Positions 7,687 to 61,098 of a stretch of 64,000 nucleotides of DNA are shown in pieces. The DNA comes from Dimorphilus gyrociliatus (lineage: Eukaryota > Animalia > Annelida). Below the pieces are notes generated by a model. That model worked only from the letters and a program-made list of their open reading frames with translations, searched no databases and was not told where the DNA came from. The stretch lies in assembly GCA_904063045.1 (NCBI GenBank), contig CAJFCJ010000002.1, positions 1,572,422 to 1,636,421 of the forward strand, in the 5' to 3' direction. Position numbers and translations under genes: made by a program. Each line of letters starts with the position of its first letter. Position 1 is the first letter of the stretch.

Positions 7687-10275
7687 AAAGATACATGTAA
7701 AGAGTGAAGATAAATAGTTAGAAAAAAAATGGTACCCATAAACAAAGTAATCTAGCGATAAAAAATGTCCTAGTATGCTAACTGAAATCTTTTTTCTATT
7801 TAGTTTAAGGCGCCTTACTTTTTTTATTAAAAAAAAAACATTACTAGCAGAGGCAAATGCGGGGAAAGATAAACAAAAAGTATATAAATTTTTAGGCGGA
7901 AACGAAATAGGAAATCTTATTAAGATATTCGATATCTCGGGCACGCGGCTCCACTCTTTGCTCCGCTGATTGTTTTTCGACTAAACACCTCTTCTAATGC
8001 CATTCGCTTGGAGAATAGCGAATGGTGTTTATTTTGAATACTAGCGCTTGATTCGTGACATATGGAAAGCTTTTAATTACTAAGAAAGTCTTTTTTCTTC
8101 ATACAATTTCATTCATCAGCTTATCTGAAAAAAAGTAAGCCTAGATAGCGATTCTTTTATTCGTTTACAAAAGTCAAGGTTTTGGCTTTTCGGCAACTAA
8201 GTATGGAAATCATTCGTATAATAGATGAAAGCGGCTTGTGTATGTAATTAGTGTGTACAGCGCATCCTAATCGACTTCACCTGATGGAACATCAACATAA
8301 CTAACCCCGTTTTACGATCGTCTTTAACTCGTTTAATCTTACTGAAAGTCTTTAATACCTAACAGACGAGCGATCTTCTAAAGCAGAAAATCGAGCAGAG
8401 GCCGGACAGGAAGTCGCTAGTTGACCAGAACATTCTTGATGACTGCAATATAGATCCATCGTTGTACGATAGACAGAGGCAATTAAAGAAAGCCAGACTA
8501 CAAGACGATTTATCAGAGCATTTAAAAAATAGACCTGGTCCGTTAGACTTAGTGAGGGACAACATTCTACCAGCAGATCAAGATTTACAAGAGGCTTTAC
8601 TGAATGATGATAGTCAATCGGCGGATGATGAGCAGTGGTTAACAGATGATTTAGAAGTGGATGATCTAAATATTACATCATTGATTGATAGACTACAAGA
8701 AGGTTTTCTTGATGGAGCGAACACTTCATCGAACACGTTCAACTTAGTTAATTGCTCTCAAGCGACTTCGCCAGCTTCCAGTACTTGCAGTACAGCTAGT
8801 AGCACGGCTGGAGCAAACATTTGCAGCTTTCGAAGATCACGAGATAAGATACGACAGCAAAAGTTTACACAGCGAAACAAAATTATAAAATTCCATGAGT
8901 ATAAGGGGCCGCCAAATCGTAAGAAGAGTCCGATAAGGCAATCTCAACCATCTCCACCAGTCGTTGTAGACGACGAGCCGCCTCCAGACACAAACTATGG
9001 AGCTATTCTTAAACAGCAGCAAATGTACTTAGATTGGGAGCAAAATTCTACTCAAATAAAACCTCCAACTCCTGTAACGCCTCCCCCAAATCCGAAACCA
9101 GTGAAAACGAGCCCGAAGACGCCGATCAAAGCTTTAGATGACCTTCGGGTCAATGATCTGAAGAGTGAGTGTCGTAAGCGTAGCCTACCGGTATCGGGTC
9201 CCAAACCACATCTGTTGGAAAGATTAAAGCAATTTGCTGAAGAAATTGTCACAAATTATAATGCTGCTTTAAAGTCGACCCCTGAGACCCCTACAAAGGA
9301 GGAGGCGGATGTTACCTCTCCACCGCAGTTGTCGCCGCCTAATTCTGTAGACGTAAACGATAACCCGAACAAAGATGAATTGCTTCGTCAACAACAACAG
9401 GAGATTGAACAATTAAAAAAGGCGCTGGCAATGTCTGAAGCAAAACTGCAACAGAAAGAAGGCCAAGGGAAACCTACTCCCCAGCCTATTCGTCCAGCTC
9501 CGCCGCCCAAATCATCATCGGCGCCTCTAATCGCCCAAATTCGCGTTTTACCGACCAACAATGGCTCAAATTCCGCTCACCCACCTTCTCAGAACATTAA
9601 AATGGTTATCGCTCATGCTCTACAGCAGGCACTAGGTCAAGGAATGAGTTTGGGTACTGGATCGAAGGTTGTCCATCTGAGAACAACCCCCAGCGGCCAA
9701 TATCAAGTGATCGTATCAAATCATACAATTGATAGCGCAAAAAGGTGAGAAAAGTCAGAATTTATTAGAAATTCGTACCAAAAAAAACACAACAAAACTG
9801 TATCTAATCCCTATTTCTTATCAGTTCGACGAAATCGGAAACGCCGACTACCAAAATGCCTCCCAATTACGAACAAGTTGTCAGGGGCCGAAGCGAAGAG
9901 GTTATGCAATTCGTTAACCCGATTATGGACCAATTAAGCAATAAACAAGTCGAAGTTCAAATTGATGATGGAACCACGACCGAAAAGCAGTTCAAGGATG
10001 TTCTAGATGTATTGCTATCGGACGAGGCGGAACGTATTAACGGCGCACTGGAATGGAATGATGATTTGATGCAGCTGCCAGTGCCGACTGATACAACATT
10101 GGCATCAAATCTAGCCCCTACACCACCCAGTGTTTCATGCTCGTCCAATGAGCTCGACGACTGGCTGGAAAGTATTGTCGGGACTCCTTCCGAACCGTCT
10201 TCCGTTTTACCGTCATCCATCGATTTCCTCTTCAACGACCTTCAACCCACGCTTGACCCGTTATTGGACACTTGA
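5410..10275 (+). CDS. MRTF: Myocardin-related transcription factor (MRTF/MKL/myocardin family)
   Basis: Exons 5410-5427 (MMAGQK, tentative), 6717-6979, 7055-7230, 7511-7566, 8366-9744, 9825-10275, all phase-compatible. Contains RPEL1 (LERRLNQRRSISES), RPEL2 (LKQKIEQRPDRKSLVDQNIL), RPEL3 (LSEHLKNRPGPLDLVRDNIL), basic region (KIIKFHEYKGPP), Q-rich segment (YGAILKQQQMYL), SAP domain (LDDLRVNDLKSECRKRSLPVSGPKPHLLERLK), a coiled coil and a PPNY motif. If the 5410 exon is wrong, the start is 6735. Confidence 0.9.
5763..5776 (-). promoter_or_regulatory. X-box-like (RFX) motif in MRTF first intron
   Basis: Minus strand reads GTAACCATAGGAAC, which matches GTHNYYATRRNAAC. Chance matches are possible in 64 kb. 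Confidence 0.3.
7648..7682. repeat. (AG)n microsatellite in MRTF intron
   Basis: Direct reading. Confidence 0.95.
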
Positions 10276-28600: not shown

Positions 28601-31600
28601 TCATTGTAAAAGAAACAGTATTCATTAACTAATTATATAATTAAATTATTCGTTTAATTGTGTTCTACTGCTAAGCAAATAATTTCCGAGTAATATTTAC
28701 ACAACCTCTGACTTTTAATACTCTCAATCTTTATTGTTATATATTATTTTTTTTTATTTTTGACACTGTACATTTGTAATGCAAAAGATGTTTGGTTTTT
28801 TTTTAATGTTTGCAACAAAAAAATTTATAACTATACTAATTTTACTTTTCCATTTTAACTGGAAAGTAAATTGAGAAAGAAAGAAAAATTGAAAGAAATA
28901 ACAAAAATTGAATAATGTACAAAATGGCACTAGTTCACACTACACTCCTCTTTAGACTCTTGGTTGACGCTGTAATGGGCTTAGTTTTATCAGTTAATAA
29001 TAGCGCCTACAGTCCATCAGTGTCAATAAACGTCTCGTGAATCCCTTTTAATGTTATGTGCATCTCGTATATATAATTTTATCATCTTTTCTTTCTTCTG
29101 CCAGCAGACGAGATAATAATTTGGTAAATTTTATAATTTTAAGAATTTCTCGGTTTAAGGCAACATTTTTATGATTTCAAAAGTCTTATTTTTTATTGTT
29201 CGTAATAATACCAATGTTGCATTTTTGAATGCTCTTAACTACTACTTACATGGGTTAGATATGGAACTTTTATTTACTTAAATAAGTTGGATATCTTACT
29301 CATTTACTTCCAATATAAGCCTATATTTACATATATATATACTAATATATATATAAATATAAAGAAATATTTAATACACTCCAATTGCAATTCGTGCAAT
29401 TAAAGAGAGAAAAGCTTGCATTCAAAAATATAACTATTGGATATTTGTATGCATGTTTTCCATCGGCTATTCCAGCACCTGCATCAAATCCAGTAAATAT
29501 TCGAGCTATTACCGACAAACATACAATTACCGTTTTATGGGACCGTCCGGAGAGAATAGACTCACCAATAAAAAAATATCAAATTTTTATTATGGAGGAT
29601 TCTCCTGAAACACGCCGTATGAAGGAACCAGACGATTCGCCAACTAGACTTTCCGCAAAATCATTGGCATCAAGTCATACAATCTACGCTCTCAAAATAT
29701 GGACCCGGTATAAAATATGGATTAGAGCTGAAACACTAGACGGAGATGGAGAATTCGGTTCGATAATTGTTCGAACAGCCGAAGGCGGTTAGTTGTGAGG
29801 GCTGAAAACAGATTAAGGCGCGCCGCTTAATCGAATAATTTTAATTATAAGCACGTAAGGCGATTTTAGCGGCGCGCTATTAATTTATATAACCCCGTTA
29901 ACAGAGTGATTTATTTTTTTTTTTGAAAAAAAAAAAACCTGAGGTGATTTTCTCTTTAACCCCTCTCAGTTTTGTCGTTTGAGCATGCAGAGTGAAAAAA
30001 GGATATTATCAGCGTGATAATATCAATTTTTTCCTTAAAAAATTGTATTTTAATAGACATCTATCCTTCCTCCCTCCCCTCCTATCGTTGTGCTCGCATT
30101 AAGCACGGTAATACGAGGCCGCGGGGTTAATGAAACGATTTATTAGTGTACTTTTTTCAATACTAGCATAAAATGGAAGAAGGATGTTGGAAAATTTATT
30201 CCCTTTCTTTTTTTCATTATTATTTATTATATTAATTTTTTTTGCCAATTGAAACGAAAGAAACAAGAAAATACTCTTAAACAAAATTTTCCCTTATCCT
30301 TTTTTGTCTTGTAAAATGATTTCAGCGACTATTTTCTTTATTTAAAAGCGATTAATGAGTAGGGAGATGTATGATTTTATGCGACGGAAGTATAACAGGG
30401 AAAAAAAAAACATAATCTATAACGATGGTTTTTTTTTAATAAAAAAAAAGAAAAACTTTTACTAATCTCAATTAATTTTTTATTACAAAATATTTATTTG
30501 GTTTTTTTGTTTGTTTTCTCTTCCCCTTCTAACGGTATAGTTCCGAAAAAGCCGAAGAATCTTCGAGGTACAGCATTTAATTCAACTACTATTGGAATTT
30601 ATTGGGATAAGCCCCATAAAAAAGAATTGACTGGATTAATTCGAGGCTACTATGCAAACGTGTGGGAGATTGTCAACGATGGAAAAGTTCAATACATAAA
30701 AATAGGGAGGATAACATCGAAATCTTCCACTCCATTTATGCTAATTACTGGTTTAAAGCCAGACACAAACTACTCAATTACTTTAACTGGTCTATCTAAA
30801 GTTGGAGATGGTGAAAGCACAGACCCGATTATTGTGAGAACAAAAGGAGCTGTTCCCTCTCCACCGACTGACCTAAAGTTGACCCTTGTTGATGGCGAAC
30901 AAACTACTGTTCGTGTTACGTGGAAGCCGCCCATTAGAACTTATGGAAAAATCGAAAAATACAAAGTGCTCTATACTGCAGAAGGCGATAAGTATACAAA
31001 TGAGCGACGGCTAGATCCTCGGAAGAATAATAAGTATCAGGCACAAATGCTAGGTTTGTATATATTTACCTTGAACTTTTCCTAACCCCTTGTCCGCATT
31101 GTATTTCATCGTTTATTTTTTTTTATGCGTATATTTTCCTTTGAAACAGCTAAGGGCACGACTTACGAATTTCGAGTTGCAGCAAAGAATCAAGTGGAAT
31201 ATGGAGAATTCGTCGTCGGTTCTATATCGACACCTGAAGGACGTGAGTCAGTTCAGTGTACGAATGAGTCTCTATTACGCGAATAGAGATTGAGTGATTC
31301 TGTGTTTGTTTTATTCGCGTACGAAAGATCAAAAGGATGAAAGTGTACGAGTGAATGAATAAGAAACAATCTATAAAAGTTTCTTAAATAGTTGTATAAA
31401 ACAAAATAGAAAACGTTATTTGTACGATTGAGAAAGATGCCTCCTAAACACGATCTTATTACTTAAAAGAAGAAAAAAAAACCAATCAATTTGATTGATT
31501 TGCTATATATATATATATTTATAAATATTTTTAATTAGAAAATTAATTTTTTTCATAAACGGTGGTTGTTGATACAATCTTTTGAAACAACCATCTCTCA

Positions 31601-34600
31601 ATCGCCTGAACAAATTTTCTTTGCGATTGGGACTTTCAATCATAAAATGAAAGGAAAGAAACAAACAATAATATAAAAGAAACATAGCGTCTTTAGGAGG
31701 TTTTATCGAAGAAAATACTTCATAGTTAAAATCATAAATTTTCTTTTTTTTTTTTCATTTTTATTTTCATTTTAATTATTTCTTCTTTTTTTTTATTAAA
31801 AAAACTATGAAGTATACTTTTTTTGTATTGTTTATGAATGTATTGTAATTGAATCAATAATTTCTTTTACAGCACCCACTGGTGCCCCGAGAAACGTTAC
31901 TGTATATCCGTATGGAGTAAAGAGCTTTCAAGTTACGTGGTCCCCTCCCGAGAAAAAGCAAAGAATGGGAAAGATGGTAAATTATGAAATTGTATATCAT
32001 CCTGTTGGTAAAGAACAGTCAGAAATGTCTGTTAATTCATCTGAGGCAACAAGTGCGATTCTCCAGGATTTGACAATGAATATTTGGTATAGTCTCCAAG
32101 TGAGAGCCTATACGTCAGTAGCAGAGGGTCCTTTTACAAAACCAATAAAATTTCGTACGGAAGGCAAACAACCTGGTCCGCCTACGAATGTTTCGCTAAG
32201 AAAAGATGGGAAAAATGCTTTAATTGTATCTTTTGATCCTCCGCGAGTCGGAAAAGGCTTAGTTGAAAAGTACAAGATTTATTATTCATCTACATATAAC
32301 GATGACATGGAAAAATGGGATAGCGTAGAGTTTGATGCTAGTGAAACAGAGCATAGAATAGAGAGTATTGCTGAAAAGACCAGCTATTGCGTACGTGTTC
32401 GCGCACTCTCTTCTCACGGCGGTTTTGGTAACTTTTCAGAAGTTAAATACTATCATCCGAACGAAATTAGCAATGAAAGACACAATCAAGTCAGAAAACT
32501 AGACCTCCGAAACAATAATCCTGATTTTTTGTTAACTTGGGAAAGACCTACTTCCAATCGCCCAGTAGAGAGTTATCAATTGACTTTAAAGAGCACTGCA
32601 ACGTATTTCGATGAAAGGGGTCGGCCACAAACTGAATCTAAAATCAAAAGAATAGAGCTAGACAGCACGGCTAGAGAACGCATATTTCCGAATTTAAAAC
32701 CAAATACTCATTACAAATTTCTCGTCGCCGTACAATTCGAAGGCGAGCAACATTATGAACTACCGTTAGGTCTTGATACAAAAACTGATGGCATCCCACC
32801 GAAATTTATCCAAGCACCTGAGGCAGTACCATCTAAAGGATCTCCAAGGTTTAAGCTATTTAAATCGTCGACTAGAAACGGAGTAATAAAGCATTACACT
32901 TTATACGTCGTCGACGCCAGTGCCGTAGATAGCTTTGGACAACCACCAAAATTTCTCATGGAATATAATCAAAATAAAAATATTAAGTTGTATCCGACAG
33001 CTCAGTTCGACGGTAATCCAACATCGCCCAATCGCTTACCAAATGAATTCAAATTAGGCGATGGAAAAAAGTAAATATCTATTTCCACAAATAAATTCAA
33101 AGAAAGTTAGAGCTTCCTCTAATAAAATATTCAAAATTTAATTAACAGATATGGAGCGTATAAGAATAGACGTTTGACACCGGGAGATAAACTTACATTA
33201 TTTATGATGATTACGGAAGAAATGGGAAAAACTGCCTATTCTGGTTATTCAGATTTAGTAACAGTTCCTCTTGATGGAACTTATGATGTAAGCGTTGAAA
33301 TATCTATTAAATAACCCAAGTTTAATTAAAGTTTTATTGCATTCTTTCTTTTATTTAAATAGTACAATGATAGTAGCGAAATAGCAGAACAAGAAAATGG
33401 AAATTTAATATGGGTTGTTGGACCTATTTGCGGAGTTGTAGTTCTTATTTTAGTTGTTATCTTCGTCGTAGTATTTTTCAGGTAAATTACATAATTTGTG
33501 TTGTAAAAGAGCCGCAGCTCTCTCCTTGAAATTTCTTTCGCTTTGTTTAGTATGTCGACGATGTTTTGCAGGCGTAGAGCAGCTAAACGACAGTTAGATA
33601 AGACAAAATTGCAAACAACATTAGCAACACCTATTCCGGCTCCATCGAATGCTATTTCAAAACCCCCTCCGGTTTCTGCTGTGTCAACCCTCATGCCACA
33701 AAGTTCTATGGGACTCTCTCAACATAGTATGGATCCTGTTGAACATAGAAGAAGAAATAAAGCAACAACCGCTTTGGCAGCCCACCCGCCAATCTCTGTG
33801 GTGGACCTAGCTGATCATATAGATCGACTCAAAGCAAACAACGGTTCACAGTTTTCAGCGGAATTTGAGTCAATCGACCCTGCGGAGCAGTTGACTTGGG
33901 AACATTCCAGCATGGATGTGAATAAGTCAAAGAATCGATACGCCAATGTTATTTCTTATGATCATTCACGCGTCAAATTATCAATGGAAAATGGCATTAC
34001 TGGTAGCGATTATATAAATGCCAATTTCTTGGATGGATATTGTAAACAGAACGCCTACATAGCTTCCCAAGGACCAATGCCTGATACTATGTCGGATTTT
34101 TGGAGAATGGTATGGGAACAACAGGTAGCAAGCATAGTAATGATGACAAGATTAGAAGAGAGAACAAGGATAAAATGCGATCAATATTGGCCAAATCGAG
34201 GACCAGAAGTTTACGGATCGATGACTGTAACATTAGTTGATGTTACAGAACTGGCAACTTATACAATACGAACATTCAGCTTAACTAGAGCTGATGCGAT
34301 TGGTGAAAAAAGAGAAGTCAGGCAGTTTCAGTTTACCGCATGGCCAGATCATGGCACACCGCTACACCCTGGTCCCTTATTATTATTTATGAGGAGAGTG
34401 AAGGCCATGACACCAGTTGATGCTGGCCCCACAATTGTACATTGTTCAGCAGGAGTTGGTAGAACAGGTGCTTTCGTGGTTATAGATTCGCAATTAGAGA
34501 GAATAAAGCACGTTCCTACTGTCGATATATATGGTCATGTTACGTGCCTTCGGGCACAGAGGAACTACATGGTGCAAACAGAAGAGCAATATATCTTCAT

Positions 34601-35525
34601 ACACGATGCTATACTCGAAGCTGTACAAAGTGGGAATACAGAAGTTCCTGTTCGTAGTCTATTTAATCATATTCAAAAATTAACAACGCCCCAACCTGGA
34701 GCTGAGAGAACTGGATTGGAAGTAGAGTTCGCCAGACTCGCTCAAACAAAACCAAATTCCGCCACGAAATTTGTATCTGCAACCTTGGCTGTAAATCGTT
34801 TCAAGAATCGCCTCGTCAATATTCTACCCTATGAGAATTCCAGAGTGTGTTTGCAAGCGTTACGAGGTGTCGAAGGATCAGATTACATAAACGCCAGTTT
34901 CATAGATGGCTACAGATATAGGAAAGCTTATATAGCCACACAAGGTCCATTGCAGGAAACGACAGAAGATTTCTGGCGTATGCTATGGGAACATAACTCT
35001 ACTATAATTGTTATGCTCACAAAATTGCGCGAAGGTGGAAGGGAGAAGTGTTTTCAGTATTGGCCGGACAGATCTGCTAGATATCATTGCCTTGTGGTTG
35101 ATCCCGTTGCTGAATATAATATGCCCGCATATATTCTCCGAGAGTTTAAAGTCACCGACGCTCGTGACGGCCAGAGCAGAACGGTTCGTCAATTCCAATT
35201 TACCGAATGGCCCGAACAAGGAACTCCAAAATCAGGCGATGCCTTTATCGATTTTATCGGTCAAGTTCACAAAACAAAGGAACAATTCGGTCAGGATGGA
35301 CCTATTACGGTTATGTGCTCAGCGGGTGTCGGTAGAACGGGAGTTTTTATAGCATTATCAATAGTATTGGAAAGGATGCGCTATGAATGCGTTGTCGATC
35401 TCTTCCAAACAGTAAAATTGCTGAGAACACAACGACCGGCCATGGTACAAAGCGAAGATCAATACAGTTTTTGTTATACGGCCGCTTTGGAATATTTAGG
35501 ATCATTTGATCATTATGCAACATAA
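19680..35525 (+). CDS. Lar: LAR-type (R2A) receptor protein tyrosine phosphatase, PTPRF/PTPRD/PTPRS/Lar orthologue
   Basis: Exons: 19680-19767 (signal peptide [19 protein letters not shown]), 22816-23121 (Ig1), 23676-23839 and 23902-24025 (Ig2), 24566-24868 (Ig3), 25171-25449, 25918-26018, 26081-26288, 27796-28110, 29476-29787, 30541-31053, 31150-31242, 31873-33070 (nine FN3 in total), 33149-33287, 33363-33481 ([27 protein letters not shown]), 33551 or 33572 to 35525. D1 has [20 protein letters not shown]; D2 has [20 protein letters not shown]-terminus FDHYAT is typical of LAR. All junctions are phase-compatible. Confidence 0.97.
23390..23403 (+). promoter_or_regulatory. X-box-like motif in LAR intron 2
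   Basis: GTAACCATGGATAC, one mismatch to GTHNYYATRRNAAC, near-palindromic. Confidence 0.25.
24217..24243 (+). CDS. 27-nt in-frame micro-exon of LAR at the Ig2-Ig3 linker (meB position)
   Basis: ttttag|TTTCACCATCGAAGACAGAGAAACAAT|gtaagt; phase 1-1; changes LYVK-VRQTPP to [19 protein letters not shown]. Confidence 0.75.
24937..24945 (+). CDS. 9-nt in-frame micro-exon of LAR between Ig3 and FN1
   Basis: cttcag|TCGGAGGAG|gtaaat; phase 1-1; upstream intron 68 nt; adds VGG. Confidence 0.55.
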
Positions 35526-41135: not shown

Positions 41136-42509
41136 CTAAATATTTCTTCCGACAATCTTTACCGGTTCTAAAACAGATTCAACAACAGGTTTTATCAATA
41201 TAAACTCTAAGTGTTCCATTTCCACCAGATGAGGTCTTAGAAAACCAACTTCACATTCGAGGGTTGCCGACGAACTGCTAGACGAAGAAGATGAAGAACT
41301 TGAGGAGGATGACGAGGAAGATGATTGAGAGTCCGAAGGTGTAGACATTTTCCTTAGAGGCAGATCTTCAGACGTAAATTGAAACCTTTCTATGGGTTCA
41401 TCATCCGCTGATAACTCTGTAATTTTTTCATCAGTTTCTTTTGAAGAAGAAGTCGATATTTTGTCAATAGAACAATAATTTGAATCTTGATCATCCTGTG
41501 GAGCGAAATGATCCCAAATTTTTGATGTGCTTTCAATAGCCTCTTTTTCTGATTCATAAGGGATTCTGCAATTATCTGCTAGAGGATTTGTGACTTGATC
41601 TTCTACAACTGTGTAGATGATAACATGGTTATTTATCGTCTCTTCCACGGAGAAGGGAGTAAAGTCATCTTTTTCATCCATTTTGCACATTATGGCGACG
41701 TGGCGCCTGTCTAATCCACTTTTACGAATACTTCTACGCAATTCCGTCTGAACACTGAAATCTGCAGTTGCTGTATCGGTGGCACAGTCAGCCACCTCGA
41801 TATTTTGTGAACCAACCGGTATAACAGCTATTGCATGATACACGTGATCATCAGATTTCTCTATTGTTGTTACTCCTGTAGTTGAGTGGTTCTGTACTTT
41901 ATCTTTAGACTTTGGAGCTTCATCTTCTGAAGATGAAGAGCTAGAAGAATCTGATCTTGATCTCTCCCTTTCTTCGATAGTAATCTGCTTTGGTGGAGGA
42001 ATCATCTCAATTTCAATAGTTTCTTCTTTCTTTTCAATTTCTACTTTCTCAACTGTCCTTATAGGGGTAGCAACAGCCACCACAGATATGCTAGTCTTAG
42101 AAGATGACCTAGAAATATTTTTGACTTCTTTTTTCTCTTCTTTTTTCGTTCCTTTTTTTTCCGGTTCATCTTTTTTCTCTTTTTTCTTACTTTCAATGCT
42201 GTTTCCACTTCTAGCTTCGTTACCCACACTCTGACTTGTTTGCATCTCTTCTAAAGGTACGACTGCTGTGTTTAGATCACCCATTGTGTTGTATCTCTTA
42301 AGTTCACTGTATTCCGCATTGGTATTATTTAGTTCCAAAGTCGACAGCCATGTTGATAATTCTCTGTCAATTGTATCCCCATCAGCTTGAACACCTAATT
42401 CATCCCAACTTTTTTTCCCCTTTCTCTTCTTTTTCGAATGTTGTTTACTCAACTTCTTATCGTTATCTTTCACCTTTTCTGACGACTTTTTACTATTTTT
42501 ATTGCCCAT
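41136..42509 (-). CDS. Single-exon low-complexity protein of unknown function with MGxxxSK N-terminus
   Basis: Uninterrupted ORF of about 457 codons from ATG 42509 (MGNKNSKKSSEK...), far too long for chance in AT-rich DNA. Lys/Glu-rich and poly-Ser tracts; no recognisable folded domain. An in-frame TTG lies 12 codons upstream. Confidence 0.75.
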   Translation of the reverse strand: MGNKNSKKSSEKVKDNDKKLSKQHSKKKRKGKKSWDELGVQADGDTIDRELSTWLSTLELNNTNAEYSELKRYNTMGDLNTAVVPLEEMQTSQSVGNEARSGNSIESKKKEKKDEPEKKGTKKEEKKEVKNISRSSSKTSISVVAVATPIRTVEKVEIEKKEETIEIEMIPPPKQITIEERERSRSDSSSSSSSEDEAPKSKDKVQNHSTTGVTTIEKSDDHVYHAIAVIPVGSQNIEVADCATDTATADFSVQTELRRSIRKSGLDRRHVAIMCKMDEKDDFTPFSVEETINNHVIIYTVVEDQVTNPLADNCRIPYESEKEAIESTSKIWDHFAPQDDQDSNYCSIDKISTSSSKETDEKITELSADDEPIERFQFTSEDLPLRKMSTPSDSQSSSSSSSSSSSSSSSSSSSATLECEVGFLRPHLVEMEHLEFILIKPVVESVLEPVKIVGRNI

Positions 42510-44002
42510 GCTCAACAGAGAGAGCGATTCAAAGTGACTGAGCAACTAAGTTTGTAATGCATTTATAACTTTCTTATCAGTTGACGTGTATTAGTAATAT
42601 TTGTTAGTTCGCATACCTTTCACATCAAACACGTCACCTATTCATCTATTTAAACATTGAATGTCAATAGATAACGCAATACGTACAAACGCACAGATTG
42701 GTGCTTGTTAATAAAAATTACAAAGAAATGATGGATAACCGGAAGTAGGTCTTTGTCAGTACTTTTAGCGGATGCACATTGACTCCTCAAATTGCTAATA
42801 GGAATATGATTTTGATTGAACTATAACTAAGTGTTAATTATTGAATAAAGAGGAATAAAGACACGTATGATAAAACCCCCTTCCTTTAGAAGAAAAGAGC
42901 GAAAATTATACTAATTATCTAGTGCAAATTTGATAAAAAGTAGTAGATATTTCATTAGAATTTATATCTTTTACTATATTTTCTCATTTTGTTTTAATTA
43001 ACAATCCAAAAGATCTAAAACAAAAAAAAACAATCGAATATGGAACAATGGTTTTTTTATTCAAAACAATAAAAACAATAAAATATTGATTACATTAGAA
43101 TAAAACTGTCCCTCTATAAAATAACGTTTTTTCTGTTTATCTTCGAATAAATAGACAGAAAGAATATTATCAAAAAGCAATAATTTTTAAAGAAAACTAC
43201 AAAAAAAAATCAATCGTCAAAGCACTAGAAACTACTCAAAATAATTGACAATGATTTTATCGATAAAAAAATAAAAAAAAGGAATAAAAACTGGTAAAAA
43301 AAAATAAATTATCCCAGTTTAATCTCCATAAAAATCAAATATTTAAGAATTAATACTTTGAGCTTAACGTTTCTTGTTTAAATTGTCCAATTACTGATGG
43401 AACGAGACAAGCAGTTGCCAAGTGTTGTGCAAGTGGGGTAGCTTTTTTTCTTTTACTAGCTCTCTCCCTCTCTCTGTCTGTCTCTCTTTCATTCCTAATC
43501 TTTCATTTTTCTCACTCTTTTATCCTCCCTTCCATTCCCCATTACAAGTAAGTAATAAATGTATAAATTATCTTTCGTATGTAAATTTTATACTTAAATT
43601 TTAATGCAAAATTAAGACCATTTTAAGATCTTTAATCTTTAGATAATTTAGCAAAAGTATTATTAATCCTTGATGGAAACGGATGTATTCTTTCTATTAT
43701 ATTCTTATTTAGCATCACTTAAACGGTAGATGGAGTTGTTAAAAATTATTTAATTATTTTATGATAATATTACAGGAAAGAAGGGAGTTTTTTTTTGCAT
43801 CATTTCCACACTGTTCTTTCGTTCCGTTAAACCTTATTATATTCTAGATTCTTTCTTTCTTTTGCTTTTTTTTTAAGGTTATGAGAAACTTTAGAATTTT
43901 TTGCTAATCTAATACCTAAATGCATAAAAAAAGAGAGAAAAAAGGTGGTACTTGTTAGTCTTTTTTTCCCTTTATTTATTCTGCTATTATATTACATTAC
44001 AG

Positions 44003-52774: not shown

Positions 52775-54187
52775 TTACATTTTATGCAAATATTCCCCAA
52801 AACACAAAGATGCGTTAGTACCCCCAAAACCAAACGAATTTGTAAGGGAAATGCGTCTTTTCTTGCTTTTCCAGTCTCTTGCTTTTAAACCAACTATATC
52901 TAAGTTCTCTAAACCTTCAGCGACATTATCACAATTTAAATTCGGTGGTATGATTTCTTCAAAGCAAGCTAAAATAGAGAAAATTGCTTCAACGCTTCCA
53001 GCAGCACCTAACAAATGTCCGACAGAACCTTTAGTTGAAGAAACAGCAACATCGGAGCCGAACAGCTTTAAAATAGCTCCTCCTTCTGCCTCATCTCCTA
53101 GAGGAGTAGACGTGGCATGTGCATTTACGTAGCCTACATCACGTCTTCGAGCTTTCGCGTCATCTAAAGCTGCTCTCATGCAACGCAGTGCACCATCACC
53201 ATTTACTGACGGTGCAGTTATATGGCCAGCATCTGAAGAAAGCCCATAGCCTAAAACTTCCGCATAAATAGTTGCACCACGACTTAAAGCTCTATTTAAC
53301 TCTTCCAAAATCACTATACCGCATCCCTCTGACATAACAAAACCGTCCCGATTCTTATCAAAAGGCCTTGATGCTTGAGTGGGGTTATCATTATAATTTG
53401 TAGTGAGGGCACGCATTCGGCTAAAACTATAAAAGTAACATTAAAAGTCATGACGATTAATGATAATATACGGGCTCATTACCCTGCAACAGATAGAGGC
53501 GTTATTTGACTCTCTGTGGATCCAGCAATCATAACATCTGCATCTCCATATCTGATAAAGCGGAAAGCATCTCCAATCGAATGAGCTCCCGTTGTGCAAG
53601 CTGTTGATACAGTATGGTTTGGACCTCTAAAGCCATTAATAATGCTTAAATGGCCAGCTGACATATTAGCCAAAACTTTGGTAAAAAAATGAGGATTCAC
53701 TCCTCGATATTTGTTTTCAGACATAAGTTTGCATGTGTCACCTATCAAATCCATATCAACCAAACCGATTCCTAAGCATACGCCTGCTCTTAACTTCTCT
53801 TCATCAGACATTGAACTCAAACCAGCGTCTCTTAGGGCTTGGGAAGATGCAATTACTGCATAATGAGTTGCCGTTGTCATATTTCTCTGCTGGGCTTTAG
53901 ATAGATATTCATCAATTACAATTTCATCCCTGGGTACATGAGCAGCAATTTTACATGGTATAGTATCATATTTCTCAACTAAAAAAAGAAAAGTAATTTT
54001 ATGACTTTTAAAAGCTATTAAATAATAACTAACTATCTCGTATTTTTGTGATTCCACATTCCCCTCTTTTCAGTCTCTTCCAAGTATTATTTACACCCAC
54101 TCCCAAACAAGTAACTAATCCTAAACCAGTAACAGCCACGCGACGCCCATTACTAAAGTGTCTAATATGTGATTTAATAGAAATCAT
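52775..54187 (-). CDS. OXSM: Mitochondrial 3-oxoacyl-ACP synthase (FabF-like)
   Basis: Exons 54187-54034, 53978-53483, 53426-52775. Short presequence [16 protein letters not shown], then [10 protein letters not shown], catalytic [29 protein letters not shown] and [12 protein letters not shown]. Confidence 0.95.
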
Positions 54188-54707
54188 TTCGGGAATATTT
54201 CTCCCTCAAGCGAAGAAATTTTCTGCCGAAATTCTTCCAAAGCAACTTTGGACGGTGCACTGTTTATCGACAAATCTTCAGATATTTGGACAAATAAAGT
54301 CCTCAAATCGCAATGGAGTTTATCTAGTGTTTCAATGCGTTCCGTAATATCCACGGTTTGGTCAAGAGATGCTACTAAGCTAAAAAAAATATATATAGTA
54401 ATATGAGATATAATCGGTTGCAAAAAGTTTCTTTTACGTCAAATGCCCTTTAAGCTGTCCGATACGTCGGAAAAATTCTGCTGACTGAACGAAACCAGCT
54501 TCAAAGCCTTCTTGAGTGTTACTATTTTGCCCTTCTTCAAATCCTGATCTAAATCCGTCCTAATTTGTGTTTCCAATATTAAAGAATCACACGAAAATTA
54601 TATATAATAGTTACCTTAACGTGCTGATTTCGTAACTTTTCCCAGTCTTTATTTGCTATGTCCAATGAATTATCAGCACTATCGCTGTCTTCTAATAATT
54701 CACTCAT
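54184..54707 (-). CDS. YAE1: Yae1 maturation factor of ABCE1
   Basis: Exons 54707-54615, 54559-54438, 54379-54184 (136 aa; introns 55 and 58 nt). [34 protein letters not shown]...IGQLKGHL fits the Yae1_N deca-GX3 repeat. Lto1 carries a related repeat, but the [13 protein letters not shown] pattern favours YAE1. Confidence 0.8.
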
Positions 54708-55538
54708 AACATGAATATAAATCAAACTAGATTTCAATGCAACTTTTCATGTGTTCTCTTAAATATTTCACACAGTAGAATAATCAAAATCTGGATGAGT
54801 TTCGCTTATTAAATATTTTTGGTACATTTAGCTCGCCTGCCGGGTGACCAGTTTAAACTGTATCATCTTAAGAACTATACAATCTATATTACATTTGATA
54901 CCATATAAAACAAAAAAGCTTATAATAAATAATATTTTATAAATAAACAGAAAAAATGAAATAAACTAAATTATTATTAATCATTAAATGAACTTTGTTG
55001 AACAACTTTCTCTCGATACTGAGAATATGGTAAAGACAAATTAAAGATATGAATGAAAACTTCAACTGTTCTTTTTTAAAATATGTAAGGTTCTTTCAAA
55101 AGTGTTTGGGCAACTATCTTTCTAAAATAGAGTTACATTGGTTCAAGTAATACAAAAGTAATAATAACTCAATCTAGTAAAACTTTTGCAATTTCTTCTT
55201 TTACAGCACTCGTATAAGTCGTTTACAACTATATTGAAGTGTTTATAAAAACACTTATTAATAGTTATATAAAAAAAATAAGTAAACAATAACTGAATAA
55301 GATTTTTACCTTAAACAGCTACGTGAAATAAGGTAAAACAAACGATTCTACAACCTATGTAAATCCCTGTACAATGAACAGTAGTTCGTCTCCAACTGAT
55401 ACTCAAATAATTCATAAGTGTATGATAACATTTGTCATTTTTGCAGTACTCGTTTCAAATTTCGAGAATCAGATGACATCTACTAATAAACTTGCCCATA
55501 TACTATTCAATCGTTATTAAAAGTATTGCTATTATGTT

Positions 55539-56230
55539 TTATTTATTCTCTAATAATTTGCTATTTTTAGAGTTCAATTTCTTTAATTGATTTTCATCTT
55601 TTGACTTAGAATCATCTTCTGGTACGTACAGATCAAGAGCTCTAAAATATAACAATATATTTCTAACAACGTTTTCATCTAGTTTGTACTCTTTGGCAAT
55701 AGATTCAGCTGAATGCTTTACAGGATCGGTAGAGTGAAGACTGATAAATTGGACAGCTTGCTTAAGTGTACACTTCCCTTCTCTGACTTTTACTGGAGCA
55801 ATAAAACCAAATTCTGGATCGGTATGCCGACGACGATCCTGGGGGAGGCCAGGTTTTGCTGCTGTAATCTAGAGAAATTGCTAATATATAGTAAAGCCTA
55901 TTAGAAACTATAGTGGATGGTATTTACCTCAGGCATTTTTTCTGGTTCAACTACCAACCCATGCAGCATTTGATGAAGATTTTCGTTCTTTTCAATTGAG
56001 GATTTTGTAAATTCTTGATCTACAATTATTATGTTATAAACAAATTTCTCGTACAAATACAAGTTGTATTAAATACCTATTTCGGCCAGCCGATTATTTT
56101 CTTTACTACTTTGATGCCTTGGAGCAGCTATAGGTTTATCCTTATGCTTTTCGATAACTTTATGAGCACGGTTTTCAACATTCCAATTTTTAACCGATCT
56201 CCTTGTTATTTTTCCAATTGTTGAACCCAT
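55539..56230 (-). CDS. NDUFAF4: Complex I assembly factor NDUFAF4
   Basis: Exons 56230-56077, 56019-55928, 55868-55539. MGSTIGKITRRSVKNWNVENRAHKVI..APRH, then EGKCTLKQA, SAESIAKEYKLDENVVRNILLYF, matching the NDUFAF4 pattern as recalled. Confidence 0.85.
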
Positions 56231-56355
56231 TTTTTACAAGTCTGTATTTATTAAACTTTTCTAATTTTTCCTCACGAGTAAATGGTCAAGGTCATGCGGT
56301 GAGAAAGAGTAAAATATTCAGATTTTTTGAGAATAGTGAAAAAAAACCTAATAGT
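56231..56355. promoter_or_regulatory. Candidate bidirectional promoter between NDUFAF4 and the Gag-derived gene
   Basis: 125 nt between divergent ATGs (56230 minus, 56356 plus). Depends on the proposed first exon. Confidence 0.45.
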
Positions 56356-57863
56356 ATGGTTCTGAATTGGAATATTATTATAGGTGGCGCATTTTTTCCC
56401 ACGGTTTGTCATCCATCGAGAGATTTGAAAAGAAAAGTATAGCCTTAAATTGATAAACAGTTATTGAGCATTACTCAAGTAAAATTTCAGGAAATTGTAA
56501 AAGTAATTTGACAAGTTGGTTTTCACAAATTATTCTGTACGTTTTCAGAACTTTTCAAAAGTCCAAGATGGAATATATAACAAAATGAATTGTACACTTT
56601 CCAAAAATTTAGATTTCTATTGTGTATTATACTCTATTTTCAGATCAAATGGGCCGAATTAACGATTATTTTGAAAGGAAATTACAGCTTAAGAATGTTT
56701 TCTATCGCAAGAACGGTGAAAATAACGGCCATAACTTTGGCACCTCGAAAAATCTAGACAACCCCTTTAACACAAGTGAGATACTGAAAGACGCAGATTT
56801 AATAAAGAATTTAATTGGTCACTGGAGTAATAAGGATAGCACTATTCCTTGGGAGAATTGGTGGTGGAAGTTTAGATTTTTTGTTCAGGAATACGAAGAA
56901 GAAGAGAAACAAAAGTTATTTCTTTTTATGTCATTAAAGGACGAGGCAGCAGAACAAACTTTAACATTTATCAAAAGAGGCTTTTCCATGGAGAGAATTG
57001 AATATGAGTTCGGGAAATTATACGGAACTTCTAAATTAAAAACTTCTATTAAAGAAGAACTTTTGAAGAGAAAGTGGAACAAGCAAAGTGAATCTTTTGA
57101 AGATGTGTGTAAAGAGATTTCTGAAAAGGTAGACTTAGCTTATCCACTGTCCACAGAGGAAAAAAAAATTGCTAAAAAGATAAAATACGCTTTGGCAGCC
57201 CAAAATGAAATGTTGGTTAAAGTGAATGTAACAGATTGGGAACAATTTCTTAATTTCGCCAAAGTAATTGATCAGAATCGAAAACACAAAGAGAACATAA
57301 TCGATCTTAAAGAGTATTCTCCACTACCACTTTTGTGGAAAGAACCGCCTATTCCATCTACAAATTTGAATGAATTAACTGATCATGATCATAGCAAAAC
57401 ATCAAGAGTCTTTTTATTTAAAACTGGAGATGTTAGGGAAAAAACTGAAAATTCTAAGAATCTGGGTGGTTTGTCACGTACGAAAGGAATTACGCCATAC
57501 AGTTTTACAGTTACAGCTCAAATTAATAATGTGAATTTTATTGCTGTGATAAGTTCGGCTACCCAACATTCTCTCTTAGCCAAAAATATTACTAGTAAAC
57601 TGTCTTTAAGTAATAAAACATATTCTTCGGCTGCGATTGAGAAAATAAATGATGACAGAGCAAAATTTAATATTCAGATTGGAGATTTTCTTGGTGAAAT
57701 GGAATTTAAAATAATCGATTCCACTCGAAATGATGCAATAATAGGAATCGATATGCTTGTAAGATATGATGCAAGAATATCCTTTAATTCAAGTTTACTA
57801 TTGCTAAGGAAAGAGGGTAAAGATTATGATATAAAAATGTATATTATTTATGAATTACTCTAA
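56356..57863 (+). CDS. Ty3/gypsy retrotransposon-derived Gag capsid plus catalytically dead retropepsin; probably domesticated
   Basis: Main exon 56644-57863 is fully open. Capsid-like helices: WENWWWKFRFF, LFMSLKDEAAE, EFGKLYG, ESFEDVCKEISEKVDLAYP. Retropepsin fold: FTVTAQINNVNFIAVISSATQHSLL...DAIIGIDMLVRYDARISF. Proposed 5' exons 56356-56403, 56461-56502 (or 56478) and 56549-56591 are phase-compatible (about 450 aa). No pol or LTR. Confidence 0.75.
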
Positions 57864-58320
57864 GAAATGAACTTTTAGATATATTATAATAATGTATAAA
57901 TATATCAACTTAAAGAACTTCAACTAACTTACTATTGACAGCTACTTTAACATTGTTAATTGGATTTAGTCTTCCATTTTACCTTGTATAACTGTTTGAA
58001 TGTTTTATAAATAATCAAAAACAAATCTGAAACTTATGCTATTTAGCGAGAAAACTGGTATTAAATCATATAAGTATCATAGTTTTATTGATTTGAAAGA
58101 AATGCTTTTGATTTATGTTTTATAATTGAGAAATAATAGGAAAATTCTCTTCAAATAAAATATCTATCAATTTATTTCGAACTAAAAATTGAAGTAAGTG
58201 AAATATAAAACAGCCTGGTGCCCCTTTCCTGCCGGTTAAGGAATTCGTTATTGATACTACATGAATCGTGTATACCTTTTAATTCGAAAGCAATACCGGT
58301 AATACAGACTATGTTTAAGA

Positions 58321-60167
58321 ATGACCGATAGATCGTGTCGTTTCTCTGAATCAAAAATAGTATTTCACCCGTTTGAGTCTAAAGAAACCATTAAATCACT
58401 TGATACAATATTGCAACTATTAACCTGTTGTTTTGGGCCTTATTCTCGATTGAATGCATTTCAAAATGTAAATGGCGGTAAAGTTACTTTAACATCTTCA
58501 TTAGCTAGAACTTTAAAGCTTATAAGTATTGCCAGACCGGAAATTAGAGTTTTAACATCAATCTTAAATGGTTATTGCAATACATACAAAGAAGGAGGAC
58601 ACTTTGCTGGAATTCTTAGCATCCAATTGATTAAATCATGTTTGCAATTGAGAAAAGAAATTCATCCAAAATTGATATGCGACGTTCTAGAACTTCTTAA
58701 CGTAGAGTGTTCATCATACTTAAAATCTGAAATATGTAAAACAAAACGAAAGTTGGACTTAACTTCAATATCGCACTTTAAAAATGTTATTAACAGTATT
58801 TTACTAACAAAACCTTTAGTAAAATCCTATGCTGATCGTCTCTCTACAATATTATTAGAAGCTTTCATTAAAACGTTAGATGATTCTCAAAATTTGATAT
58901 TTGCCACTGAAAGAGGGCTGTTAAAGGATTCCAGATTGTTAAATGGTTTATACATTAGATATCATGGATGTAATAAATTCGAAGGGAGTTTAGATGGAAA
59001 AATTGTTATTTTCAACGAATCAATGAGTGGAGACGACTTTTCACAAAATTTTCAAACATTAAAGTAAATAAGTATCATAAAAAATAAAGATATATAATAA
59101 ATTGATTAAACTAAACTACAGGTTAATTAAAACATCTGATAAGGATACTAATTTCCCCATGCTTAACAAGATGCTTTTGTTTGTAGCTCACTTAAAAGAG
59201 ATGGATATCAAAGCCCTATTTTGTCAGAAAGTTATTCATCCTTTTGTTAAGAGAAGGTTTGTTAAAGCCTTTCGAGTTTTTTTCATTAATAACATATTAA
59301 GAGTTAAAATAGACTTATAGAAAAAGGCATTTTCTTTGTTGAGAGAATCGGTATAGAAATGACGAACTCGTTAAGTAAATTAACTGGTAAAATATTCTTA
59401 TAATCGTTTACTATAAAGGTGATGCAAATTTTTGGTAAAATTATAGGTGCAAAACTGATAAGTTCGTTCGAAACTTCCTATCTTGAAGAAGAAGATTTTG
59501 GAATTGGTAGTATATCTTTCGAAGAAATAAATCATAAATTTTATTTAACAATAAAATGTACGAAAAGTAGTATTCATACTTTTCTATTGATAACCAACGA
59601 CGATGACGAAGAAGATGAAATCTTAGTAATATTTATCATATTTATTTTTAAGTTAATATCTAACGAATCCTTTTTATCAGACTCTTCTAAAAAATGGAGA
59701 CTTTTGTTTGAGAACCTTGCTGCAAGTTCCTTTCGTTTTATGTGGAGGCGGTTGCTGGTTAGGCGATCTACATAATTTTTTAAATGAGAAGGTAACTTCT
59801 TACTTCAAAATCTTAATACTATTATTATAATAATGCTATATTAAAGGCTAGAAGCAATTTTAAAGAATGGTCTTTGAAGCTTAATTGCAAAGCGCAGCAT
59901 CTACAAATTATTGCCAATATATTGTCTGATAATTTGAAGAGAATGATATATATTCTTCATAAGACTCAAAAGAATTATATAGATGTAAGAATTAACGATG
60001 GTCACGTATTCTTAGACGAGAACAAGAGTTGTTGTTGCTCGAATTCAACAAACACTTCAGGTATCGTTCTTGATTGCTTGCATATAGTTGAAAATAGTCT
60101 AAAGTGTGCTATAAACATGTGCAATTTACTCATTTCAACAAATTTTTTCATTGAGGGACAAGTTTGA
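58321..60167 (+). CDS. MKKS: McKusick-Kaufman/BBS6 chaperonin-like protein
   Basis: Exons 58321-59063, 59122-59256, 59313-59386, 59447-59625, 59681-59791, 59847-60167. Contains CCFGPYSRL, SSYLKSEIC, SILLTKP, LFCQKVIHP, ERIG, VLCGGGCW and VLDCL. Confidence 0.88.
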
Positions 60168-61098
60168 TTTTAATTTATCTTCTTTTATGTTTTTTGTCAT
60201 TTGAAATAAACAGCGTTTAATAAAATTTCGTAAACATTTTATTACGTATATTATACAGCTTTGCTGTATATAGTAAGCATAAATATTTAACGATTTCTTT
60301 TATATCAATTGTTTACATTGTATATAGAAATTGACGGAACGATGAAAGATTATAATACCAGAGACGAGGAGAAGAGCTGCAGTTAGTTACATAGGGGATA
60401 ACATTCATATTAACAATAACAGTTATGATTTTTGATCTCAAAGTCAATAGACAATTCTGATTTTGTTGCAGAGATATAAAAATTTATTATTGTTCTTTTA
60501 AACTCTAGTTTCCAGATTGCCTTGAATTCGTATGGCCTTCAGAGCATTTACTGGTAAGGAATATTTTTGTCTGAAATAAATTTCAAAGGTATTTTACGAT
60601 TCTTTCCTAATGATGAAATAAACATTATGAAACAACTTCCTTTATTTCATGCTAAAAATCGAACGCATATTAAATAAAAAATGTTACAAAAGTTTGTTGC
60701 TAAGGGACCATCTCATGCTTTTTAGTTACAAAATACAGAGCGAAAAGAAAAAGAGCCAGATAGCCAGAATCTGTAAATAAGTAATACAAATGGGTGGAAA
60801 GGAGCAGGGAAAAGAAAACAAATGGAAATTAGAAGAAAGACTAGTATTGATTTTATCACAATGTTAACACAACTTTATAAGATCACATTTGGATAACATT
60901 CAACTTATTTTCAGCATATTTACGTATATACGCATACAACTGATGGTAGGACGACGTATTTCTTAGGTGTGTTTCATTCCATAGGATTATTTAATAAATG
61001 CGAAAAAAATGGGATATAAAAGGTATAATTTTGGAATATGAAACTAATAATGAATACGAAAATATAAAACATCTTTTTACTACTCTTACTCATTCTTA

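Follow-up and report, generated by a model that had tools for sequence, protein, structure and literature searches.

An orphan gene of the annelid Dimorphilus gyrociliatus with a predicted inactive retropepsin-fold domain and a possible origin in a retrotransposon gag-pro region

PEG10 and RTL1 are mammalian genes that were domesticated from the gag-pro region of Ty3/gypsy elements, and PEG10 keeps a recognisable capsid (CA) domain, a CCHC knuckle, a -1 frameshift and an active Asp-Ser-Gly (D-S-G) site. Arc proteins are without a protease domain. ASPRV1/SASPase, NRIP2 and NRIP3 are stand-alone cellular retropepsin-like proteins that belong to vertebrate or mammalian families; a retroelement origin has been proposed for stand-alone genes of this kind, and SASPase is catalytically active. 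The proteases of Ddi1 and of long terminal repeat (LTR) retrotransposons are close relatives. In the Ddi1 family, according to PMC5028754, an N-terminal ubiquitin-like domain (UBL) accompanies the retropepsin-like RVP domain, and a helical domain (HDD), consisting of a four-helix bundle and a two-helix hairpin, lies directly before RVP. The current work describes a gene in a stretch of 64,000 nucleotides of Dimorphilus gyrociliatus (assembly GCA_904063045.1, contig CAJFCJ010000002.1, positions 1,572,422 to 1,636,421 of the forward strand; this whole stretch is called the window), the product of which appears to combine a helical N-terminal half with a C-terminal retropepsin fold that has lost its catalytic residue. 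The reading that we favour, tentatively, is that of a selected, lineage-restricted, non-catalytic dimerising protein, probably what is left of an ancient LTR-retrotransposon gag-pro region.

The genome of D. gyrociliatus is compact (73.8 Mb, with a median intron of 66 bp) and contains 4.87% transposable elements, with Dingle as the resident Ty3/gypsy family; its annotation was made with transcript data (PMC7854359). A scan of the window for open reading frames (ORFs) located an open frame at 56622-57863 on the + strand, which ends in a stop codon at 57861-57863. The first ATG of this frame, at 56649, yields a protein of 404 amino acids (aa) identical to the one annotated in GCA_904063045.1; in the public annotation the coding sequence (CDS) likewise starts at 56649 and consists of a single coding exon, on a contig of 4.6 Mb. 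At 31% G+C the stop probability is 0.074 per codon, so that 413 open codons in a row would arise with P of about 2e-14 per frame, and the chance of such a frame anywhere in the 64-kb window, on both strands, is about 2e-9. An earlier reading of this DNA, made from its letters alone (the sequence-only reading), had described a 1220-nt open exon, and this length is indeed obtained when counted from the acceptor-like AG at 56643.

Codon usage was scored with a table built from the neighbouring exons. The log-likelihood is +0.13 per codon in the frame of the gene, as against -0.04 to -0.63 in the five other frames, and the score stays above zero throughout codons 51 to 400 when these are taken in blocks of 50. 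The G+C content at third codon positions is 0.286 and matches that of the neighbouring genes. Thus, the gene is real: chance does not account for so long an open frame, and its codons are used as they are in host genes.

The C-terminal part of the product resembles a known fold. PF09668 (Asp_protease, Ddi1-type) is the best Pfam family; it matches the isolated aa 280-404 at 27.5 bits (E=3.7e-6), above the cut-off of 26, and the match spans profile positions 12-108 of 109, while the score against the whole protein is 23.4 bits, just under the cut-off. The same residues are matched at 16.8 bits by PF13975 (gag-asp_proteas), which belongs, like PF09668, to the clan Peptidase_AA. A sequence search of the PDB with aa 270-404 returned six chains with congruent ranges (7efy, 3s8i, 4rgh, 7d66, 4z2z and 2i1a; best E 0.0032); all six are Ddi1-type RVP domains, and no retroviral protease is among them. 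These matches support a retropepsin fold for aa ~286-390, and they agree with the sequence-only reading, which had placed a retropepsin-like domain here with a stop right after it.

The active site of this domain is degenerate. S302-S303-A304-T305 aligns with D-S-G-A of 7efy_A, and the strand-loop contains no Asp. Since the catalytic Asp-Ser/Thr-Gly is replaced by Ser-Ser-Ala, the protein, judged by its predicted residues, cannot act as an aspartic protease, and the word "pseudoprotease" that had been used for it earlier is appropriate. Conservation is seen in a second stretch, where G-L-D-M-L-x-R-Y/H of Ddi1 is kept as G-I-D-M-L-V-R-Y.

The part of the protein that precedes this domain is predicted to be helical. 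Two low-confidence AlphaFold2 models, run without an alignment because there was no homologue from which to build one, both place 9-10 helices between aa ~42 and ~212, followed by an unstructured chain that extends until the beta-rich protease domain. The number and length of these predicted helices are compatible with a two-lobed capsid domain. The putative linker occupies the place where a nucleocapsid would be; no CCHC pattern, such as many though not all Gags have after CA, was found in the 404-aa protein, which contains a single Cys, and the sequence-only reading was right that no such knuckle separates the helical part from the protease domain. At aa 1-70, Pfam gave no family at E<=10, and hence no UBL, and this region is predicted to be helical or unstructured in the low-confidence model.

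A cellular source of the protein can be considered on the basis of these results, namely a diverged duplicate (maybe a retrocopy) of DDI1/DDI2, in which the UBL and the catalytic Asp were lost and the helical half was derived from HDD. It would account for the best Pfam family, which exceeds gag-asp_proteas by the scores given above, for the six PDB matches out of six to Ddi1 RVP domains with none to retroviral proteases, and for the intronless CDS, which is expected of a retrocopy. The list of PDB matches, however, is partly a sampling effect, because few LTR-retrotransposon proteases are present in the PDB. The absence of a UBL at aa 1-70 argues against such a duplicate, as does the exhaustive phmmer search described below, in which no Ddi1 protein was found at E<=0.001. 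Ddi1 also has a helical domain directly before RVP, but HDD comprises 6 helices in ~105 aa abutting RVP (PMC5028754), whereas the low-confidence models predict 9-10 helices in ~175 aa and a linker of ~70 aa in the present protein. A Ddi1 duplicate is thus considered unlikely, though it deserves to be kept in view.

Searches for relatives returned the query only. This was the result for the whole protein, and for aa 55-235 and aa 275-404 at E<=10, against a word-indexed set of 5.8 billion proteins, and also for an exhaustive phmmer search of 1.84 billion cluster representatives with no length filter (E<=0.001). No relative was found in metagenome and viral contig scans, the protein cluster has one member from one contig, and tblastn of the protein against the 64-kb window gave a self-match only. 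By these comparisons the gene is an orphan without detectable relative. Assuming that the whole D. gyrociliatus annotation is in the collection, the gene has no annotated paralogue and belongs to no recent multi-copy protein family. As regards the single copy expected in the sequence-only reading, no paralogue was found among the annotated proteins or in the 64-kb window, the range over which one was looked for.

The gene sits in a compact, gene-dense interval between two host genes. Its start codon and that of NDUFAF4 are arranged head-to-head, 418 nt apart, and the next gene downstream, which Pfam assigns to the Cpn60_TCP1 family, begins 457 nt past its stop codon. The latter distance had been given correctly before, as had the 125 nt between the NDUFAF4 ATG (56230) and a start codon then proposed at 56356. 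From the stop codon of the orphan gene to 58321, the + strand carries no ORF of at least 40 aa, so that there is no room for pol. A repeat search over 54000-60500 gave only short AT-rich chance pairs; hence, no LTR-like direct or inverted repeats flank the gene. The ORF and repeat scans thus bear out the earlier statement that LTRs, and space for pol, are missing between the flanking host genes. The large ORFs of the window that were scanned gave no match to a transposable-element family and are host genes. The absence of LTRs and of pol and a fixed position between host genes, all seen here, are among the features that operationally define a domesticated retroelement gene. Demonstrable homology to a retroelement gene would be another, and in that respect the RVP fold is common to retroelements and Ddi1. 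As a separate observation, the 418-nt interval between NDUFAF4 and the orphan gene (56231-56648) suggests a shared bidirectional promoter, because the two starts are head-to-head and so close to each other.

The survival of the open frame was simulated with substitutions only, no indels, and the base composition of the window. At 0.02 substitutions per site, the frame was still open in 19% of runs; at 0.05 the share was 1.7% and at 0.1 it was 0.08%, and from 0.2 upward no run kept the frame. The protease domain belongs to a known superfamily, yet phmmer with the single sequence finds no member of it. A 404-codon frame that is intact despite such great divergence of the protease domain implies selection against disruption, and we infer that the gene has been kept by selection. 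This would not hold for an element of an unsampled family that arrived very recently; such an arrival is unlikely, since pol and LTRs are absent and no other copy was found among the annotated proteins or in the 64-kb window.

The same data speak to the possibility that the locus is a non-functional leftover, either a decaying fragment of an unsampled divergent element family or an over-predicted ORF. The failure of every search to find a homologue or orthologue would be in keeping with such a leftover. Its frame, however, would be lost by ~0.1 neutral substitutions per site, and an open run of 413 codons is far outside what the 7.4% stop probability per codon allows by chance. Host-like and frame-specific codon usage along nearly the whole length, the lack of an LTR, pol or other element remnant around the gene, the lack of a transposable-element match among the large ORFs scanned and the position in a compact gene-dense interval all point in the same direction. 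A non-functional leftover is therefore quite improbable.

For the 5' end of the gene, the sequence-only reading had proposed three acquired coding introns and a signal-anchor N-terminus, as parts of an Arc/PEG10-like Gag-pseudoprotease that would form capsid-like particles or a membrane scaffold. The GT-AG intervals exist, at 56404-56460 (57 nt), 56503-56548 (46 nt) and 56592-56643 (52 nt), and the second one has an alternative of 70 nt that starts from a GTAAAA donor at 56479; the four pieces join the main frame at 56644 in frame, although the coordinates given earlier were off by 1-2 nt. The upstream exon peptides comprise 16, 14 and 14 aa, and the unspliced upstream region carries an in-frame TAG at 56610-56612. 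In addition to the preserved frame, interval lengths of 46-57 nt beside the species median of 66 bp, two good-looking acceptors out of three, and an A at -3 and a G at +4 of the ATG at 56356 speak for this model. The W/F-rich and acidic-aromatic stretches that resemble Gag motifs by eye do so too, as a lead only.

However, a path was counted as equivalent if it began with an ATG, contained no stop, used at most three GT-AG introns (each 40-100 nt) and added at least 30 codons; by this count, one exists for 56% of 400 anchors placed at random in the window. Among 300 dinucleotide shuffles of the 418 nt upstream of the gene the share is 61%, and the unshuffled sequence has three to four alternative starts of this kind. 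Since 56-61% of controls allow an equivalent path, the in-frame upstream exons carry no statistical weight. Two of the three proposed donors (GTTTGT and GTACAC) are unlike the five donors that could be securely inferred nearby (GTGAGT, GTAGAT, GTATTT and, twice, GTAAAT); the comparison was made by eye, as five secure introns are too few for a scoring matrix. These introns, two in SSF, two in NDUFAF4 and the first of the Cpn60/TCP1-family gene, were derived from gene span and product length. The proposed hydrophobic run has ~14 residues across an exon junction, with breaks at Gly-Gly and Pro and no basic n-region, whereas a signal anchor was taken to need an N-terminal hydrophobic helix of ~18 residues or more. 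Moreover, the transcript-informed annotation (PMC7854359) begins the CDS at 56649, and an ATG at 56356, just 125 nt from the NDUFAF4 start codon, would leave little room for two 5' untranslated regions (UTRs) and a promoter. Nor did any of the searches yield a capsid match. The acquired introns and the signal anchor, both at chance level and in conflict with the annotated single-exon start, are thus unsupported, and the complete model of which they are part is highly improbable.

Translation most likely begins at the ATG of the annotation, at position 56649. The acceptor-like site that ends at 56643, 5 nt before this ATG, may mark the end of a 5'-UTR intron. In AT-rich sequence, in-frame GT-AG exon chains are no evidence of coding exons. 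Exon structure was ambiguous in three of the five intron-containing neighbour genes, each with dozens of stop-free solutions. The ambiguity of the genes from 46649 onward is a caution, in its own right, for splicing models made by eye in this AT-rich genome.

In the favoured reading, the product would consist of three parts: an all-alpha half (aa ~40-215), an unstructured linker of ~70 aa and the C-terminal domain of retropepsin fold. Retroelements are by far the commonest source of such domains. The ancestor would have been a gag-pro gene that lost pol and the LTRs, with a Gag part that diverged past recognition. The C-terminal domain would serve as a dimerisation and peptide-binding module, perhaps still able to bind extended peptides, and by pairing two helical halves it would turn the protein into a non-catalytic scaffold or adaptor. 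Obligate homodimers are the rule for retropepsin domains; with retropepsins and Ddi1 as precedent (PMC5028754), the domain most likely dimerises. Descent from an LTR-retrotransposon gag-pro region is plausible. It is preferred to a Ddi1 duplicate because of the way the domains are ordered, because the CDS has no intron and because the frame stops directly behind the protease.

Several results weigh against this favoured reading, most of them concerning its Gag part. No Gag, capsid, Arc, PNMA, SCAN or Ty3-capsid family was found by Pfam hmmscan at E<=10, in searches where HMMER filters hide most matches weaker than E ~0.1; the queries were the whole protein and aa 1-70, 55-235, 60-150 and 140-235, and the entries listed for the N-terminal queries were unrelated families only, with E of 0.007 and weaker. 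The helical half had no relevant sequence match in the PDB, only a chance match to a copper chaperone. The AlphaFold2 models are of low confidence, with a mean predicted local distance difference test (pLDDT) of 35 for the full length and of 51 for aa 40-230, where it reaches 62-79 across aa ~69-134. When the low-confidence aa 40-230 model was compared by Foldseek with PDB and BFVD, no match reached E<1 and no capsid fold was recovered for the N-terminal half, a result that is uninformative either way. By ~10 bits, the RVP domain fits the profile of the cellular Ddi1 family better than the retrotransposon profile PF13975. Selection had to be judged indirectly, given no orthologue in the protein, metagenome or viral searches, and the view of copy number covers the annotated proteins and the 64-kb window.

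The assignment of the helical half to a Ty3/gypsy capsid in the sequence-only reading is hence unsupported, not refuted: the stretch rich in W and F at aa ~66-77, like the acidic-aromatic one further on, is Gag-like by eye, a likeness at the level of motifs that is a lead and no test, and searches by profile, by sequence and with a poor structure gave nothing. Since the RVP domain fits PF09668 better than PF13975, a retrotransposon origin is plausible but not established. This score advantage does not decide the origin, since Ddi1 and LTR proteases are close kin and the latter are rare in the PDB.

A stronger form of the gag-pro origin can be imagined, in which an independent annelid domestication produced a dead protease that dimerises a capsid-like domain, so that particles of the Arc/PEG10 type would exist outside vertebrates and insects. 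This form is very unlikely, and capsid assembly or RNA transfer by the protein would be pure speculation. At present, the gene is an uncharacterised orphan in a compact genome, and the only assignable part of its product is the inactive retropepsin domain. If the gag-pro origin is true, the gene would be a spiralian addition to the host genes built from retroelement structural genes, and a case in which a protease fold was retained as a non-catalytic module.

Table 1. Coordinates in the window of the orphan gene, its predicted parts and its neighbours
Feature	Position	Strand	Basis or remark
404-aa protein, CDS with stop	56649..57863	+	single coding exon as annotated in GCA_904063045.1; ORF and codon usage
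All-alpha region, aa ~40-215, 9-10 predicted helices	56766..57293	+	AlphaFold secondary structure
Linker, aa ~216-285, predicted without regular structure, no zinc knuckle	57294..57503	+	AlphaFold, motif check
Retropepsin-fold (RVP-like) domain, aa 286-390	57504..57818	+	Pfam PF09668; six PDB matches
Degenerate active site, Ser302-Ser303-Ala304 (in place of Asp-Ser/Thr-Gly)	57552..57560	+	HMMER alignment to 7efy_A
Conserved G-I-D-M-L, aa 366-370 (G-L-D-M-L of Ddi1 RVP)	57744..57758	+	alignments to 7efy, 3s8i, 4rgh
Strong acceptor-like site (pyrimidine run, CAG)	56632..56643	+	resembles acceptors of uniquely solved neighbour introns
Three putative upstream exons	56356-56403, 56461-56502, 56549-56591	+	in frame at chance level; maybe 5' UTR or promoter
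NDUFAF4 (UPF0240) gene	55539..56230	-	Pfam UPF0240, E=5e-12; head-to-head neighbour, ATG at 56230
Cpn60_TCP1-family gene, 520 aa	58321..60167	+	Pfam; downstream neighbour, candidate MKKS of the sequence-only reading

Some other features of the window were recorded. On the - strand, a 469-codon open frame at 41139-42545 encodes a low-complexity sequence rich in Lys, Glu and Ser, in which Ser forms long runs; it matches no Pfam family and probably represents an exon of a disordered protein of the host. At 52775-54705 on the same strand, the annotated product of 536 aa carries both Yae1_N and ketoacyl-synthase domains, and may result from the merging of two neighbouring genes into one model or be a genuine fusion; dozens of stop-free exon solutions exist for this gene. 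On the + strand, fibronectin-III repeats followed by tandem tyrosine-phosphatase domains at 30498-35525 identify a receptor-type tyrosine-phosphatase gene, and an open frame at 8462-9748 combines a SAP domain with an RPEL repeat, a pairing that marks myocardin/MRTF-like cofactors.

Among the known systems, Ddi1/DDI2 (UBL-HDD-RVP with or without UBA/UIM) resembles the orphan protein in the RVP profile, which is the best match at nearly full length, in the retained G-x-D-M-L-x-R-Y/H stretch, in the helical region before RVP and in an overall size of ~400 aa. Unlike Ddi1/DDI2, the orphan protein is without UBL, UBA or UIM, has Ser for the catalytic Asp and, in the models, has a longer helical region with a ~70-aa linker before RVP; its similarity to Ddi1 is far under that among true Ddi1 orthologues. 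PEG10 and RTL1 share with it the order of a helical N-terminal part and a retropepsin-type domain; the orphan gene, too, is a host gene, one for which no paralogue was detected and which lacks LTRs and reverse transcriptase. In contrast to PEG10, however, no CA, CCHC, -1 frameshift or D-S-G can be detected in the orphan gene, both parts of which lie in a single uninterrupted frame.

ASPRV1/SASPase and NRIP2/NRIP3 are similar to the orphan protein in that they are cellular proteins in which the retropepsin fold is the only recognisable domain; none of them showed a sequence relationship in any of the searches made with the orphan protein, and its domain lacks the catalytic Asp, whereas SASPase is active. 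With Arc/dArc the likeness is limited to a hypothesised two-lobed helical capsid, with which 9-10 predicted helices in ~175 aa are compatible; no Gag, Arc or PNMA family or structure was matched, and the orphan protein has a protease fold where Arc has none. Dingle (PMC7854359), as the resident Ty3/gypsy lineage of the same genome, is a conceivable type of donor, although no annotated D. gyrociliatus protein resembles the orphan protein. With respect to the known classes, the gene joins the cellular retropepsin-like pseudoproteases and, possibly, the domesticated gag-pro genes.

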